A stretch of 64,000 nucleotides of DNA from Trichosphaerium sp. ATCC 40318. Its lineage: Eukaryota; Protista; Tubulinea. The DNA lies in NCBI GenBank assembly GCA_038496445.1, contig JALMLS010000397.1, positions 186,001 to 250,000 of the forward strand, written 5' to 3'. A model generated the notes under the pieces. The model searched no databases. It was not told where the DNA came from and saw nothing but the letters and a program-made list of their open reading frames with translations. A program made the translations under genes and the position numbers. Each line of letters opens with the position of its first letter. Within the stretch, counting starts at the first letter, position 1. Positions 16,388-59,048 of the stretch are shown one piece after another.

Positions 16388-16794
16388 AGCGAAAATATAC
16401 GATTGCGTGGCAAGTTTGACCAATCACGAATATTCGCTTTATAAAACATTTGACTCTTGTCCTCCTGCTTGGAGTGCCATAGTTGTGCGTTGTCCAACAA
16501 ATTTACGCGTTTTAATCCCTTTACTAGTTTTAAACTGTTCGTTATTCGAGCTCACCGCACTCTGTGTATTCGCTACATTACTTCTTTTTCTCATCTAGAA
16601 TAAGTAAACCTTGTTACGGCGTCTGTATTGCCAAATTTGTGCTATTTCGATTATTGTAGTCTTGACAACTGAGAGCTGAGATTGGCTGTAAACGAGGGTG
16701 CGTCAAGGCACGTGATATGCATCTGAACCAGTACGATTTACTTGATAGTGAATGATTGAAATGGAGTAGAAGGTTGCAATACCTAGCGTTTATT

Positions 16795-52000: not shown

Positions 52001-52801
52001 TGTACTTTATAAAACCATAAGTATAAGGAATTGACAAAAAAACCTCAAGTTCGCTCCTTGTCACAAAAATAGTTTAAACTGATTGCTTCTTGACCGCCAT
52101 TCGGCTTGGCTGTACAAGCTAGAATTATTATACGGTTGTAACCCGGCCATTGGCGTGGAGATGAGCGAAATGACCGGTTTGGGATCAAATTAAATGGAAA
52201 TTGTTTGTACGTACTGTCCCTCTACCTTTACAGTTGTTTCCATGTGTTTCAGAAGAGCATCATCGATTTTTTGTTTCAGAGACGTATTCGATACGTTTAG
52301 AATATTCTCTAGTTGGTTTACAAGCGTTTGGCGTTGTTTTGCTGAAACAGTACTGTATGCTCCCGAATGGTTCTTGGTATAGTACGTGAGAACCTGCTCT
52401 AATGATACCAGGAAAATTCATGATTTGATGCGATGCACTTGAGATAGTTATGATTTGTCGTTGGAAATGTCACTTGTCAAATTCTCTGCAATAGCAACAC
52501 CTTCGAACAAAAAATTGTGCTACAATATGAATGTTGACATGCTTGAATTACTCCGGAGGTTGTGGTATTGTAGACAATGTCGAGACAAGCGACTGCTTAT
52601 AACTCGTAAGGCCAAAACAATGCTTGAAATTTTGACACTTGTCAAATAAGTGTTTATTGATCAAGTCCAGGCGTGTTATTGTACCTTTTGTATTAATAAT
52701 AGTTGACTTGCAATAACATTATTGGGTACTCTAGAACTAAATCATGCTCACTAACCACCTCGAAAGTAGCATTTTATTCTTTGAATCCAAATACAAGTTT
52801 T

Positions 52802-55212
52802 TTATGTATTTGTTCCTTTAACAGATTCTCCACCATTGTAGAATGTATTACCAACAAAAACTTTTGCAAAATCTCCTCCAATAATACCCAAATGTATAAT
52901 CCTATCACCTGTTTGATTAACAGGGTTTACATTACGACCAACAACAATACCTAAAAAACATTTAAAACTCTAAACTTAACAATTGGTCACTGAGCTCTTA
53001 CCGTCCTCAGGCGCTCTGTATGTCTTTATACTATTTCCGAAGATATCCCTTACTTTTGCTATCTTTTGTCCTTTTGTAACCCATGTATTAGGTGCTGGAA
53101 ACACTTCAAGAATACCACCAACATCAGTGTATAGCCAATACCTACAGAACTTAAGCTTAACATTGGCTTTAAATAAGACCAAATGTAGTTCACTTACGAC
53201 TTTGTGCATATGGTTGGCATATTATCTTGAGTAGGTGCAGGTAATGGTCTCTCAGGTGATAACATTTTCAACAACCCAAGGGTGTTAATAACTCCATTTT
53301 TGGCTCTATTAATAAAGTTTTCTTGGAATACCTATATTCATCAGCTAAAAGCTTGTAGTTACGTTTATACAGCGTCCAAGCGTACTTGTGGATTACCAAT
53401 TTCTACAGTTACGCTAGACCGCTTTCCATTAGAAATAACACCACGAAGTGAACGATCAAGGCCAGTGTTATGTACTAATAATCTCGGTTATTTGTTGCCT
53501 CAACTTTAAGTAAAATTATGGATCTTACCTATGATTTGAGGACGAAGCATAAGAGCCATTTGTCGCTCTGTTTCGTTGTTCATATCAACACGAACATAAA
53601 GCGAGTTTTGTCTTCCAAAACTTGCTGTATGCAAGTCAAGAAGATAGTCAACTTGATCAATTAAACCATGAAGAATTCTAAAATTAAATTGGGCAGAGCA
53701 GTTCCCAGTACTAATACCAGGCATAACTCTATTCAAATCTTGACCATCACCAAACTCTCTCTTCTTTAACAAGTATCCTAAATGAACTATCACGATCACG
53801 ATCACGATGGCAAGCATGCTTAAGTTGACTTAAGTTGTCCGTTACTGAAGAAAAAAGAGAACGGCCTCTTTTTCATTTTAGTACCTTGCGGATTTGTTAC
53901 TGGTATAGCTACCACAGTACCACGTAACTCATTAACATCAAGCTCATTGAATAGCTTATGTATCATTGGTATGCCGTTAATTTCATTGCCATGTATGGCA
54001 GATGTAAGCCCAAAAACAGGACCTGGTTTGTTTAGTTAATTTTTACCTGGGGAGTGTTGTTTATTTTACCTTCATGTCCTGTTGCTACTATAACTGGTAC
54101 GGATATAGGTTGGCTAAGTGCGTTTTGTACTATAGGAACCCAGAATTTGTAGAATCTGTGGCGCTCTAGTTTCTAAGAAAAAGCCAATCAGCTATTACTA
54201 CAACTCAAAGAAATTGGCCTTGTTAACATACTCTGAAGTCAAGATCTTGTTTGTTGATTGTCACAACTTCAACATCTTTCACTAAATAAATGTAAGACGC
54301 AGAATGGCTAAACAATAGTAAGTTATTTTTTTTTGTTTTTTTGTACACATTGTAGTATCTTCTTCCTCGTCATCTTCGTCCGATTTCAGTCCAAGGAGTC
54401 TATTCATTGCTCCGCTTATATTTGATAGAACGTTTGAAGAGAAGAAAGGCATGCATTCTATGCTTGCTCTCAAAGCCTTTGTAAACTTTAGTTTTCCTTC
54501 TCTGTCGTATTTATCGCAAATTCTATTAAGTGCTAGCACATTGATAGACCGATAGTATTGAAGCTTATAAATTTCTTCTGATATGGATGCAATGACAGTT
54601 TGATTAGCTTTTGTGTGTGGCTCTAAAATCAAGAGAGTATTAGAGCATAATGTAGAGTAATGTCAACACTCGGATGTAAAAAAACCAGTAATTGTTTTGG
54701 GAAAATATGATGGTGAGTCTTTCATTCATTAGACTATTTATAGAAAAGTGTAATGGTAGTGATTGATGTTTTTTATTAAAGCTATAATGGTTCTTAAATA
54801 ATTGCCTGACTATTTTATAATCCGTGTCACTTTAAGTGTATGCACGTGCCTTTAAGGAACTTTTTGTAATTTTTATTAATTTCTTCTTGCTGTTGGACAT
54901 AGAACTTGTCTATTTTATCGAAATCTTTCGCTGCTAGATCCTTTATTTTTAGCTTCCATTCATCACGACCTTCCTTCGTTGACGCTACAAAACATGAGAA
55001 GTTATTGCGGATTGAAGTAATCTCAGAAGATCATTGCGAAAGCAACACTTACCCTTCTTAAAGGATGAGTATAATTGAAGAGCCTGAGCGTAATTAAAGT
55101 ATTTGTCGGACCATTGAGATAGCTGAGCTAATTTAAACTGTTTTGACCACATTTGGGATTCTCCGCGCTTCAGCGTATCCTGAACAGATATAGATAGCTT
55201 TCTAGATGTCAT
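52802..55212 (-). CDS. SPX domain fused to an AstE/AspA (M14) zinc peptidase/deacylase, multi-exon
   Basis: SPX: MWSKQF...QWSDKYFNY, FDKIDKFY and KLQYYRSINVLALNRICDKYDR. M14: GLTSAIHGNEING, PVTNP, DLNRVMPG, LDLHT and VTVEIG, with a biotinyl-like C-terminal barrel (GGILEVFP). Confidence 0.85.
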
Positions 55213-55286
55213 TTGTTGCAAATTATTCACGTTTTTAGTGTATCTGTTTAGAACGTGTACAAATGCTTTGCTACGCGTGGTAGAAA

Positions 55287-55444
55287 ACGGAGTATTGTTT
55301 ACTCCGTAAGATTTTCAAGCGATACCGAGGAAGACCTTTAAAAAAGTTGGAAATACATTTTTTGAACGAACATCCAAAAAAAAAAGATGTTCATAATTTT
55401 TTTTGGTTGTTCAATTTTTCGGATGTTCACGGCTTACATGTTCA
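55287..55444. promoter_or_regulatory. Repeated motifs in the bidirectional promoter
   Basis: Inverted repeat ACGGAGTA-N5-TACTCCGT (55287-55307); TGTTC-core motifs at 55368 (inverted), 55386, 55406, 55421 and 55437. Confidence 0.45.
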
Positions 55445-55617
55445 TCTTGGACGCTCTATTTGACCTAATACGATACAACACAACTACTATATTATGATAA
55501 CATGAACGTCAGTGCGAACAGCAGCTATACTTTCGAGGACAATTAACAACTTCAACTCTGAGAAAAATTGCCAGCGACACTCATATTGAACAACCTAAAA
55601 CCACCATAACCACTATA

Positions 55618-57770
55618 ATGGCCCATCCTAACACCGTCGAGATTTGTCAACCTGGAGACTGTGAGTACTGAACCGTTAAACTTTTTTGGCTTCTATCTGC
55701 TCTAACTTCGCTCATAGTTGAACCAGAAGTTCATTTTTACGAGAAAGTCATCAAGTACGCTCCTGCTGGCTAAAAACGTAGCCATCATCAATTGGTAACG
55801 CAATGTCTTCTTTAGTGCTGGTTTATCTAGCGTTGTATCCGGATTCTTACATATGAGCACAGCCAGTATCGTAACGAGATATCAGGTGCATAAAATGTAT
55901 GTTTTTAAAGTCAGCTAACTTCCGAAAAAGCATCTAAATCCGTCTGCTGATGCCTCGAAACTCCGTGAAATGCTAGACTACAAACCTCTACACTTCCGTT
56001 GGTCAGGCGCTGACCTTTTTAACTGTACTACTGAGCAAGGGTACGCGGGAAAACCTTACTATTTTCAAATTAATCAATTTATTCCAGTGTGCGAAAGATG
56101 ATTCTGATTGAATCCAATTCGTGCCCTTCTGGCCAAAAGTCTATGCCAACTGCATCAGAAGACGAAATGGGAGGATACATTAGGCTTATGGAACGTACTT
56201 TTAAGCCTGAAGTAGACGCTGCTATGAAAGCTGGGACACTACCAGAAGGAGGACTTGGTATGAATAATTCCAAGAAAATAACGCATATTGAACTTACGCT
56301 GCTGACACTTTGTTTTAGCTGTTATTTTTGATAAGAACAAAATGGAATCGTCAGGATACGCTTGTGCTATGGCTGCTGCATTTGACGAACCAGTTTATCT
56401 TGCAGGTACTGTACAATAGTAGATATAAACCAAGACTCATTTTTTTTAAGAGTGTCACTACGGAACAACAGACAACCTCCGTTGGGAAGATGGCGTTCTA
56501 AGTGTGAAATACGAGAATGAGTGGAAACCTTTGCGAGCAGTTTTCAGGTATTGATTAACTAACCGCAAGATGGATTGGAGCTTAAACTATCTAGATATGT
56601 GACAAAGAAGCCGTGGACAAGAATTCCTCTTGTAACTGCTAAAACTCTAGTTTTGAACCCTATTGCTGCTTGTCTCGCAGGAGGGCGTAACAAGCTAGTA
56701 GCAGCAAAAGTACGAACCTTCGAAACTGATTCTTTTGATTCCTTGAGTACACTTAATTGTATTCACAGGCATACACTTTTCTAAACGCTGAGCTTGCTGA
56801 TTCTGGACTCAAATTATTTACACCAAAGACAATTCGTGATGTATTCAAAAATGAAGTTCCTCTGTGGGTAAAAAACTTTGGAGGTTTTGCTGTTGTAAAG
56901 GTACAATTCCGCTTCTTTTTTTATAATCACGTGAAAAACACGTGATTATTTTTTTGTTCTTTCGTAGAATGTTCGTTCGCTAACTTGCTTGTAGAACCCT
57001 TATTCAAATGCTGGACAAGGTGTTTGGACCATCACTGACAAAGCTGAATTGGATGCTTTTATGGCTACCGAGCAAGAGTACGATCAATTCATTGTTCAAT
57101 CTCTTGTTGGAAACCACGCATGGAGCAGCAGAACTCAAGAAGGCGCTTACTATCATGTTGGAACAGTAAGGATTCTAGAGTGTGGAGATTTCTTACTGTT
57201 TATAGGTTCCAGATAAGAAAGGTCGTATCTACTGCGCTGATCTACGTATGATGGTCCACTATGACGCTTCAAAAGGTTGCCTCAGACCACTTGTATCGTA
57301 TGCCAGACGCGCAAGAAAACCGCTGACAAAGTCTATTGAAAAGCAAAGGTACAACATTAGATCTTTTTAAATACGTGCTTATAACGTTTAGCTCATGGGA
57401 TGTTCTTGGTACCAATTTATCTAAACTCTTACCGGATGGGAGCTGGACCACCGAAACAAGCAGGCTATTGCTTCTTGATACAAAGGACTTTAACAAACTC
57501 GGTATGAATTCGACCAAAAAAGTCAAGGTGTTATTTTAACTGTTTAAAGGTCTTGGTATTGATGATCTTATTTCTGCATACATTCAAGCTGTATTGGCAT
57601 GTGTTGCAATTGATAAAATGGCAGTTCGACTCACCAAAAATGTACGTGTCGTAGCGAAGTTGTGATCTGTAAATTCTTACACCTGTTTTTTTGAATAGGG
57701 TGAGTTCAACATGGAACTGTTCAGATCACTCAACAACGATAACGCATTGATAAGCGAACTCAAAATGTAA
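55618..57770 (+). CDS. Uncharacterised circularly permuted ATP-grasp amide/peptide ligase, multi-exon
   Basis: N-terminal GADLF...[12 protein letters not shown] (D and ExN metal motif placed first), later [21 protein letters not shown] and ADLRMM. Confidence 0.75.
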
Positions 57771-58060
57771 ATACAAACAAACCCTGAATTACAAATAAAA
57801 GCAAGTTACTCACTACTACATACACTTTCTGGTGTGCAACTTTGCGGTACAAAGGGATGAGCTGGGATGTAAAGCAATAAGTGGTAGCACGGGTATCAGT
57901 CAGTATTTGGATCCATATCATATAGTCAATGTTTGTTCCAAGTAGCAGATAACTGAGTACATATTGCAGAAAAACAAGGGATTTGAACTGATAGACATGT
58001 TTGAGTTGATTGTTACGTGAAGATTTATTCTGGTTTTAGTTGCAAAGTTGAGTACTAATG

Positions 58061-59048
58061 CTATTCATCTAGTATTCCATTTACATATTTAACATCCTTA
58101 ATTTGTTCACCATCGTAATTCCAAGCCTTATACTCTCCATGTAGTTCACCATCAACATAATGACAATGCTCTGACAACTGACCGTTCTCATACCATTTCT
58201 TACACTCTCCTTCTTGCTTGCCATCTATAAAAGTAAACTGTGCTGCTATTTGTCCGCTCTCATACCAACTCTTTGTCTCTCCGCCAAGCTTACTATTTAC
58301 AAAAATACACTTTGCTTGTAACTGACCACTATCATACCACTTCATAATATGATGTGATTGTTGTTCACCGTTAACAAAGTATAACTGTCCACTTAGATGT
58401 CCATTATCTATCCATACTTTACATTCTCCTTCTTGTTTATCTTTAACAAAGAAACCTTGCTCAGCTAACTGGCCATTCTCATGCCAACTTTTAACCTCTC
58501 CTTCTTTCATACCATTCACGTAATTCAACTTTTTCCTCAACTGACCGTTATCATACCATATTTTTGAATCTCCTTCTCGTTTATCATGAACATAAGTACA
58601 CTGCTCAGCTAACTGTCCATTATCATGCCATCCATTGAACACTCCTTCTATCCTACCATTGGCATAGTTAAAACATGTCTTTAATTGACCGTTATCATGG
58701 AAACACTTGAAAGCGCCATCACAACAACCATGTGTTATATAAGCTTCGAACAAAATAATTGATGTGCGGGTTTCCTTATCATACTTCTGTCTAAGCCATT
58801 TACCGTGTTTATTAAACTCATTATCAAACCTTGTGCTCGTTGCTGCTTGTTTTGATAAGAGAGGCCACTTTTTGTAAATTTCAAGGTCTAATGCGCCTAT
58901 TTCATGGTGTAGCTCGGCCGGAAGGTCTAATATGCATGGCGTAGAGTCGGATTCAGGTTTGAATGTGCTTGCCTAATTAATAAAGTTCGTAATGCGATAT
59001 TTGACGCTTTTAACGTTTACTGCCCAGTACCTCGCGTTTTGTTGTCAT
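58061..59048 (-). CDS. MORN-variant repeat protein with F-box-like N-terminus; one 5' intron (58973-59030)
   Basis: MTTKRE|ASTFK..CILDLPAELHHEI, then about 9 EG..K.W..NGQL repeats. Confidence 0.88.

Follow-up and report, generated by a model that had tools for sequence, protein, structure and literature searches.

A divergent pair of ATP-grasp ligase and probable SPX-AstE/AspA hydrolase genes in the amoeba Trichosphaerium and its proposed relation to a three-gene bacterial cassette

We describe a pair of genes from the amoeba Trichosphaerium sp. ATCC 40318 for which the best-supported explanation is that it is a eukaryotic remnant of a three-gene bacterial cassette. The pair lies in a stretch of 64,000 nt, which we will call the window (assembly GCA_038496445.1, contig JALMLS010000397.1, positions 186,001-250,000 of the forward strand). 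Gene A encodes a putative ATP-grasp ligase from a family without a Pfam model (family A), and gene B encodes an AstE/AspA-type zinc amidohydrolase behind an N-terminal region that resembles an SPX domain. As a first-pass annotation of the DNA had seen, the two are intron-rich, divergent genes with about 400 bp between them (Table 1), and both are spliced in public sequencing runs. We will refer to the genes of the bacterial cassette as A, R (a second ATP-grasp ligase), and P (the homolog of the hydrolase domain of gene B). As to function, we lean towards a ligase-hydrolase pair in which A, with R where it is present, would make an amide that P would cleave, with P having been fused to SPX in a protist lineage. 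In all homology, Pfam, and structure searches with the amoeba genes, the queries were single exons, and homologs or orthologs served as stand-ins for the whole spliced proteins.

The cassette is evident from bacterial gene neighborhoods. In a Planctomycetota genome, the homolog of gene A overlaps the start of an AstE/AspA gene, and a RimK-type gene follows. A scan with one genome per species gave 80 further loci, or 82 in all, and P was found in the flank at 66 of the 82 (tblastn). Where there was at least 2.5 kb downstream of A (61 loci), P was present at 52 and the same-strand order A-R-P was seen at 40. These fractions are not independent counts because the 82 loci are the best-scoring matches and are dominated by Saprospiraceae. 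The linkage of A and P was found across at least four phyla. The products are about 480 amino acids (aa) for A, about 318 aa for R, and about 330 aa for P, which is an AstE/AspA-type zinc amidohydrolase that lacks any SPX extension in bacteria. R is a GshB/RimK-like ATP-grasp ligase (Pfam GSH-S_ATP, E = 4.5e-30; E. coli GshB, 1gsa, E = 4e-20) and is of the RimK type in Planctomycetota and in Naegleria. Start and stop codons overlap within the cassette at two loci (L019 and L001), and the cassette genes are, to judge from their sequences, translationally coupled in one operon. Thus, the expectation that a bacterial ligase of this kind would have an AstE/AspA neighbor was borne out, but the ancestral unit has three genes, and R had not been foreseen.

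The cassette resembles a known arrangement in part. RimK-type ATP-grasp ligases of bacteria are reportedly encoded next to AstE/AspA (COG3608) deacylases, as Iyer, Abhiman, Burroughs and Aravind are said to have described in Mol Biosyst in 2009. R and P fit this pattern of a ligase with a zinc hydrolase. However, the cassette has an extra and larger ligase, A, and in the amoeba and in the other eukaryotic pair that we discuss below, it is A and not R that stays beside P. Clustering of the flanking open reading frames (ORFs) found no widely conserved neighbor besides A, R, and P. Genes for the Mg2+ transporters CorA and MgtE and for MscS mechanosensitive channels adjoin the cassette in a few loci from different phyla (L001, 1237-5753; L002, 7453-8502; L087, 5010-7985); these neighbors recur but are too few to call conserved.

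For matched bacterial loci, the trees of A and P have the same major splits, as expected of genes that travel together. A fully supported split sets the Planctomycetota type apart from a Bacteroidota/Myxococcota side, and gene A and gene B of the amoeba are both found on the latter.

A second eukaryotic pair comes from a 16.7-kb eukaryotic contig (L092) of public run SRR8931237, with 59% GC and intronless ORFs. On this contig, a family A gene (P0036, 4264-6204) lies head to head with a gene for a protein of 689 aa (P0498), which has both an SPX domain (Pfam, 47.6 bits, E = 3e-12, cut-off 27.8) and an AstE/AspA domain (AstE_AspA_cat, 110 bits, E = 1e-31). The protein begins with MKFGKHL...EWRDFYIDYSALK, and its only two matches among PDB sequences, both weak, are both SPX domains (5ijp and XPR1, 8tyu). 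Its hydrolase part is 49% identical to that of gene B, and the M14 parts of the two proteins are sisters (ultrafast bootstrap 99; Shimodaira-Hasegawa approximate likelihood ratio test, or SH-aLRT, 94). Both of these branches are long, so attraction between them is possible, but the fusion and the gene order that they have in common point the same way. The two genomes are very different: the terminal branches in the P tree are about 1.4 substitutions per site, the GC content is 59% versus 37%, and intronless ORFs face intron-rich genes. At least two such dissimilar genomes therefore retain the head-to-head pair and the SPX-AstE/AspA fusion, which are not peculiar to this amoeba. Family A genes of early fungi and other protists usually have no adjoining hydrolase. 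In a metagenome scan, P0498 matched AstE genes of bacteria only; one of the bacterial contigs carried both A and P.

The first-pass annotation knew of no described SPX-AstE/AspA fusion. In a literature search, no paper contained both "SPX domain" and aspartoacylase or succinylglutamate desuccinylase. P0498 is a second instance in public sequence. In the literature searched, family A, the three-gene cassette around A, and the SPX-AstE/AspA architecture with its conserved divergent pairing all appear to be undescribed. In P0036, low-complexity sequence of about 180 aa is inserted after the E-x-N segment, ahead of the remainder of the enzyme, and its true start is probably upstream because the called start leaves out the equivalent of the first ~47 residues of gene A.

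Family A is large. With exon 10 of gene A as the query, a search of 1.84 billion representatives gave 133 at E <= 1e-3, and word-index searches counted 2,043 and 3,640 relatives. Among the family members listed, the named ones are all "hypothetical protein" and none has a Pfam domain. The exons of gene A had no Pfam match. Ten full-length homologs gave only sub-threshold matches to RimK, ATP-grasp, and ATPgrasp_YheCD (14-15 bits, cut-offs of 21-27), which cover the lysine/glycine-loop region encoded by exon 10, and none of the ten matched CP_ATPgrasp_1/2, GSH_synth, or GSP_synth at E <= 0.1. A profile of 21 family A sequences (alignment A1) found just PurK among PDB sequences, at E = 0.76.

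Many homologs of 480-500 aa can be aligned with the entire spliced model of gene A (38-57% identity). All of the ATP-grasp motifs that had been read in permuted order are present: IESNSCPSG (residues 94-102) comes first, followed by the lysine/glycine-loop segment (285-297), FIVQ (319-322), and DLR (356-358). K287, the glycine-rich loop, the hinge residue Q322, D356/R358, and E95/N97 are invariant or nearly invariant columns of alignment A1; their roles are assigned by analogy between motifs rather than from a ligand-bound structure. Gene A retains 90 of the 91 columns with at least 90% conservation, and its 11 differences from related strains are all synonymous.

The fold was also as expected, as judged from a homolog of gene A. 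An AlphaFold model of P0035 (48% identical to gene A, built on alignment A1) has a mean predicted local distance difference test score (pLDDT) of 90.6 and a predicted template modelling score of 0.91. When this model was compared to PDB chains with VIA-align, it matched hundreds of ATP-grasp chains at Z >= 8, and Foldseek agrees. At the top is 3k1t (Z = 17.7; root-mean-square deviation 4.0 over 328 aligned residues), a structural genomics entry from Methylobacillus flagellatus labelled "putative gamma-glutamylcysteine synthetase" that has only 12% identity to family A and that we take to be a circularly permuted ATP-grasp protein of type 2. Next are LysX/ArgX (Z = 14) and then glutathione and homoglutathione synthetases, GspS, YjfC/YgiC, Ddl, and RimK (Z = 12-14). 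Chains of the glutathione synthetase or GspS type align collinearly from about residue 12, but classical ATP-grasp enzymes align from about residue 135 only. This alignment from residue ~12 agrees with the location of E95-x-N97 ahead of K287, so the permuted order of the motifs is real and of the eukaryotic glutathione synthetase type. Family A is thus predicted to have a three-domain ATP-grasp ligase fold with this circular permutation. It shares with the eukaryotic glutathione synthetases (2hgs, 1m0w) and with GspS, YgiC, and YjfC the fold, an E-x-N motif before the lysine and glycine loop, and a collinear alignment from about residue 12 to about 427 (Z = 12-14), but it is only 9-14% identical to them, and the modelled kinship is one of fold and order of elements only. 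In one protein of 1409 aa (P0114), an RFC1-like AAA+ ATPase region is joined to a C-terminal family A domain (~886-1360); this may be a true fusion or a merged gene model.

The hydrolase domain of gene B is readily recognized. AstE_AspA_cat was found above its cut-off of 25 bits on exon 6 (34.1 bits, E = 2.6e-8) and again on exon 7 (32.6 bits, E = 7.2e-8), and the domain aligns end to end with the bacterial operon partners at 39-50% identity. The M14 motifs that had been reported from the sequence are all there (HGNE at 252-255, DLNR at 301-304, DLH at 335-337, and VEIG at 394-397). The putative zinc ligands (H252, E255, and H337), the catalytic glutamate (E395), and the NR motif (N303-R304) all lie in columns with 90% or higher conservation across 67 partner proteins. 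Overall, gene B retains 68 of 77 such columns, including all of the catalytic ones, so the enzyme appears to be catalytically intact. Of the solved structures, 2qj8 and 3cdx, two uncharacterised AstE/AspA proteins, are closest in sequence. Atlas searches with exon 7 and with bacterial P returned bacterial AstE clusters only. A mixed alignment of bacterial P and amoeba exons, used as a query for eukaryotic orthologs of gene B, had bacteria only among the 120 matches listed; in MAFFT alignments, short exon pieces were misplaced.

For bacterial P, the closest characterized relative by sequence is the N-acetyl-2,4-diaminobutyrate deacetylase DoeB (6twm, E = 1e-10), which raises the possibility that A, R, and P form a single biosynthetic pathway. 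P would then be a deacylase that takes off a protecting acyl group or releases an amino acid for ligation by A and R, or it would act on an intermediate, as ArgE, DapE, and DoeB do. Translational coupling of three genes in one operon is also usual for successive steps of a pathway. We consider this rather unlikely because Iyer et al. (2009), working from comparative genomics, reportedly took pairings of a ligase with AstE/AspA to be writer-eraser systems, and because a sensor domain on the hydrolase alone is more easily explained if hydrolysis is a turnover step.

That sensor brings us to the N-terminus of gene B. SPX domains are eukaryotic receivers of inositol pyrophosphates, and their described effectors act in phosphate uptake, export, and storage. 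The SPX domain of P0498 is a typical one. As in the VTC subunits, Pho81, Gde1, XPR1/SYG1, and SPX transporters, it is N-terminal to its effector, and it has the MKF start, the W..Y.DY..LK motif (Y-I-D-Y-S-A-L-K in P0498), and the K-x-x-K-K-x-x-K signature helix (K-I-T-K-K-F-E-K). In contrast to these phosphate-homeostasis proteins, the effector of P0498 and of gene B is an AstE/AspA amidohydrolase. Wild et al. (2016) are said to have distinguished, among the SPX residues, a phosphate-binding cluster of one Tyr and two Lys from a lysine surface cluster. In P0498, the canonical tyrosine and five lysines are all present, and the i, i+3, i+7 spacing of its lysines is that of the cluster mutated in Cryptococcus Pho81 (K221/224/228; PMC7587432).

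In the amoeba, the first ~190 residues of gene B are very likely a diverged SPX domain, given that its sister P0498 has a bona fide SPX domain and that the N-terminus aligns to it. Pfam SPX (PF03105), run on single exons, matched exon 3 only and fell short (12.4 bits, E = 0.16, cut-off 27.8). The alignment to P0498 has two collinear segments: residues 22-41 align with 3-22, a score matched by 1 of 2000 shuffles, and residues 106-139 align with 215-248, matched by 4 of 2000. The SPX-like motifs of gene B are W34-SDKY-FNY41, D74-FDKIDKFY82, and L130-NRICDKYDR139. Gene B has a leader of 20 aa ahead of the usual start of SPX, and it has MWSKQF where P0498 has MKFGK. Modelled alone, exon 3 folds as four helices (pLDDT 70), and Foldseek gave no PDB match with E below 2. 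PDB sequence searches with exons 1 and 3 gave chance matches only (alpha-actinin and designed repeat proteins), and neither an Atlas search nor a metagenome scan with exon 3 found any relative. So, the proposed fusion of SPX to M14 is supported through P0498 and the alignment but not by the amoeba exons alone.

The two parts of gene B are transcribed together. Among contigs of four public runs aligned to window positions 52700-57900, two begin in exon 3 of gene B and run on for another 262 and 213 nt (run X4 record 14, 494 nt; run X2 record 5, 374 nt). In length, the extensions equal exons 4 and 5 with part of exon 6, which places the SPX-like and hydrolase parts on one RNA, as the first-pass annotation had supposed.

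Whether the SPX domain of gene B still senses anything is another matter. The canonical basic surface for inositol polyphosphates is not kept in gene B: where P0498 has four lysines, gene B has R132, D135, K136, and R139, and Gln or Leu is at the position of K26. Four of the six ligand positions have been lost or changed (two conservative changes and two losses, one of them a reversal from Lys to Asp). Among strain differences, two of four in the SPX region are non-synonymous, versus none of 11 in gene A. Control by phosphate or inositol pyrophosphate is plausible for the ancestral fusion and for P0498, judging by the residues that P0498 keeps, but the lost or changed ligand positions make phosphate sensing in this amoeba doubtful. 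These losses, together with the absence of R from the window, could also mean that adjacency in the amoeba is a historical leftover without any present coupling, and that the N-terminus of gene B is a decayed helical module that does not sense. This seems quite unlikely to us, as the head-to-head order and the fusion have survived the very deep divergence between the amoeba and L092 (~1.4 substitutions per site; 37% vs. 59% GC), and both enzymes retain their catalytic residues and are expressed.

What might the pair do? ATP-grasp ligases join carboxylates to amines, as in the synthesis of glutathione and glutathionylspermidine, and AstE/AspA enzymes hydrolyse N-acyl amino acids. Judging by fold class and by the behavior of these families, A would couple a carboxylate to an amine after activating it, with ATP and Mg2+, to an acyl-phosphate. 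Candidate products are small N-acyl amino acids, short peptides, and C-terminal tails of amino acids, and P would hydrolyse the amide that A makes. Between them, A and P would control how much of one product is present, in the manner of the synthetase and amidase halves of glutathionylspermidine synthetase. GspS likewise couples the synthesis and hydrolysis of one amide, but there the hydrolysis is done by a CHAP amidase in fusion with the ligase, and here the hydrolase is a separate AstE/AspA protein. In the proposed history, P acquired an N-terminal SPX domain in a protist lineage, and the genes for A and SPX-P ended up in a head-to-head arrangement. SPX would probably have tied hydrolysis to inositol pyrophosphate, and hence to phosphate status, in the ancestral fusion; in this amoeba, with an eroded binding surface, that control may have been weakened, re-purposed, or lost. 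An ATP-grasp ligase of such a shape, Cp1B, makes an epoxysuccinyl-amino acid in the pathway to E-64 (PMC12568646).

A protein might be the substrate instead. A (with R in bacteria) could add amino acids to the C-terminus or to a side chain of a conserved protein, with P as a carboxypeptidase-like eraser. There are parallels in RimK, which acts on ribosomal protein S6, and in the TTLL ligases and CCP peptidases, which act on tubulin. TTLL6 and RimK are among the structural matches of the P0035 model at Z = 12, R of some carriers is of the RimK type (see above), and the ~70% identity of family A from Rozella to Mortierella would be expected of an enzyme that docks on a conserved macromolecule. 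Yet the best structural matches are ligases for small molecules (3k1t, glutathione synthetases, GspS, and Cp1B), and the clustering of flanking ORFs found no candidate target gene conserved in the neighborhood, so a protein tag appears unlikely. In animals, the N-acetylaspartylglutamate synthetases RIMKLA/B and aspartoacylase ASPA, like the TTLL ligases and CCP carboxypeptidases, are ATP-grasp ligases and M14-like zinc hydrolases that act on related amides. However, they are not neighboring genes, they belong to other subfamilies, and they have no SPX domain; we found no orthology to them.

Several observations weigh against a make-and-break pair derived from the cassette. First, the substrates and products proposed for family A and for this AstE/AspA subgroup, and the antagonism of A and P, are argued from analogy. 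Second, as AstE/AspA enzymes like DoeB act inside pathways, P could by analogy supply A rather than oppose it. Third, P is absent within 8 kb of A in Podila, Rhizoclosmatium, Cyanidium, and Naegleria, that is, in most of the eukaryotes that have A. Fourth, there is no R gene in the 64-kb window. (A weak tblastn match of R at 16409-16783 was dismissed, as no reading frame supports it.) If A needs R, then part of the pathway is missing from the amoeba pair, unless an R gene is present elsewhere in the genome. Fifth, the linkage percentages come from closest matches, mostly in Saprospiraceae. Finally, PDB sequence searches, Atlas, and the fold search with exon 3 all failed to detect SPX on the amoeba exons, and its lysines are largely replaced. 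We still favor the ligase-hydrolase pair, with the confidence given at the outset.

More tentatively, the SPX-AstE/AspA protein and the family A ligase might form a cycle, gated by phosphate status and conserved across distant protists, that makes and breaks an amide metabolite or a protein tail. We regard this as possible but doubtful. If there is such a make/break cycle, then family A would make an unrecognised metabolite that is widespread in eukaryotes and bacteria. SPX on an amide hydrolase beside a dedicated ligase, in two distant protists, would suggest that phosphate signalling has a new output, for instance a compound that is rich in nitrogen or that balances charge, or else a protein tail. 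Family A has more than 3,600 proteins, a confidently predicted ATP-grasp fold, a tightly conserved three-gene cassette in bacteria, and ~70% identity across early-diverging fungi. The product of the cassette could be findable by ordinary genetics and metabolomics because several carriers are in culture (Tenacibaculum, Neolewinella, Lewinella, and Portibacter).

Family A is found in Saprospiraceae and other Bacteroidota, Planctomycetota, and Myxococcota, and its distribution in eukaryotes is patchy. It is present in nearly all of the early-diverging fungal lineages listed (Mortierellomycotina, Mucoromycotina including Mucorales, Glomeromycotina, chytrids, Rozella, and Basidiobolus), with ~70% identity to the query from Podila verticillata (P0006; proteins P0253-P0371). 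There were no Dikarya among the 120 best matches to P0006. The early-fungal proteins often have an N-terminal extension of 50-250 aa, and Physocladia obscura has two copies that are adjacent by locus tag. Further members are in Naegleria fowleri, Reticulomyxa filosa, and Cyanidium caldarium. At two paralogous loci of Naegleria fowleri (L085, 7440-10586; L094, 7873-11001), the family A gene is followed by a RimK-family ATP-grasp gene on the same strand; here, a heterolobosean retains the A-R half of the bacterial cassette. Kinase and guanylate-cyclase genes come after the A-RimK pair at both loci.

The origin of A and P is likely bacterial, as the operon is bacterial, bacterial P has no SPX extension, and the spread in eukaryotes is patchy. 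The direction and number of transfers are not settled by the trees: two trees placed gene A with the P0036 clade, at support that was moderate to weak (SH-aLRT 89 in one, 76/76 in the other), and the tree of family A settles neither whether the eukaryotes form a single grouping nor which way the gene was transferred. It had been inferred that the ligase and the hydrolase were acquired together, and congruent phylogenies were proposed as a check. The bacterial trees of A and P do agree; acquisition of both genes from bacteria in one event is plausible, but trees do not establish it.

The gene models are given in Table 1. The pair is bounded by two stop codons, at 52802 (gene B) and 57770 (gene A). 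In the contigs of the four public runs, 12 of the 13 introns of gene A are exact joints, and short loose ends fit the thirteenth (intron 7); for gene B, the joints listed include introns 6 and 8. That bacterial DNA has contaminated the window can be rejected, as the many spliceosomal introns of both genes are spliced out in these contigs.

Table 1. Features of the divergent gene pair (window coordinates; exons are listed in the direction of transcription)
Feature	Position	Strand	Description
Gene A	55618..57770	+	14 exons, 482 aa; introns GT-AG, 40-94 nt; manual model
Gene A exons	55618-55660, 55718-55754, 55816-55885, 55931-56040, 56088-56257, 56319-56405, 56451-56547, 56595-56709, 56769-56900, 56995-57165, 57206-57348, 57392-57501, 57550-57641, 57699-57770	+	
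Gene A exon 5	56088..56257	+	Putative metal-binding motif E95-x-N97, preceding the ATP-binding part
Gene A exon 10	56995..57165	+	Glycine-rich loop after K287 (last codon of exon 9) and FIVQ hinge
Gene B	55212..52802	-	11 exons, 540 aa; probable diverged SPX, then AstE/AspA zinc amidohydrolase; manual model
Gene B exons	55212-55053, 54984-54850, 54622-54347, 54281-54232, 54172-54070, 54022-53885, 53777-53529, 53474-53386, 53331-53198, 53141-53002, 52950-52802	-	
Gene B exons 1-3	54347..55212	-	~aa 1-190, SPX-like helical domain
Gene B exons 5-11	52802..54172	-	AstE/AspA catalytic and C-terminal domains
Gene B intron 2	54623..54849	-	227 nt, GC-AG junction
Shared divergent 5' region	55213..55617	.	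405 bp between ATGs at 55212 and 55618

The transcripts of the two genes start close together. A template-switch oligo tail at 55597 puts the 5' end of the gene A cDNA at about 55598, and contigs of gene B extend to 55292 and 55323, so the 5' ends are at most ~275 bp apart.

Intron 2 of gene B is several-fold longer than the neighboring introns. It is not among the contig joints listed, but it must have a GC-AG junction, as this is the sole frame-preserving junction that fits the depth profile. The intron is kept in one contig of lower depth (X4 record 15, contiguous over 54600-54879), which could reflect intron retention or pre-mRNA. A contig of run X3 (depth 461) joins 52974 to 54326. The ends of this junction are non-canonical (CT..TA), and the contig has 255-nt loose ends on both sides that are unlike the window, so it is probably chimeric or foreign rather than a splice form. 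Just downstream of gene A, at 58061-58753 on the minus strand, an intronless ORF encodes a MORN-repeat protein of 230 aa (Pfam MORN_2, E = 3.8e-37).

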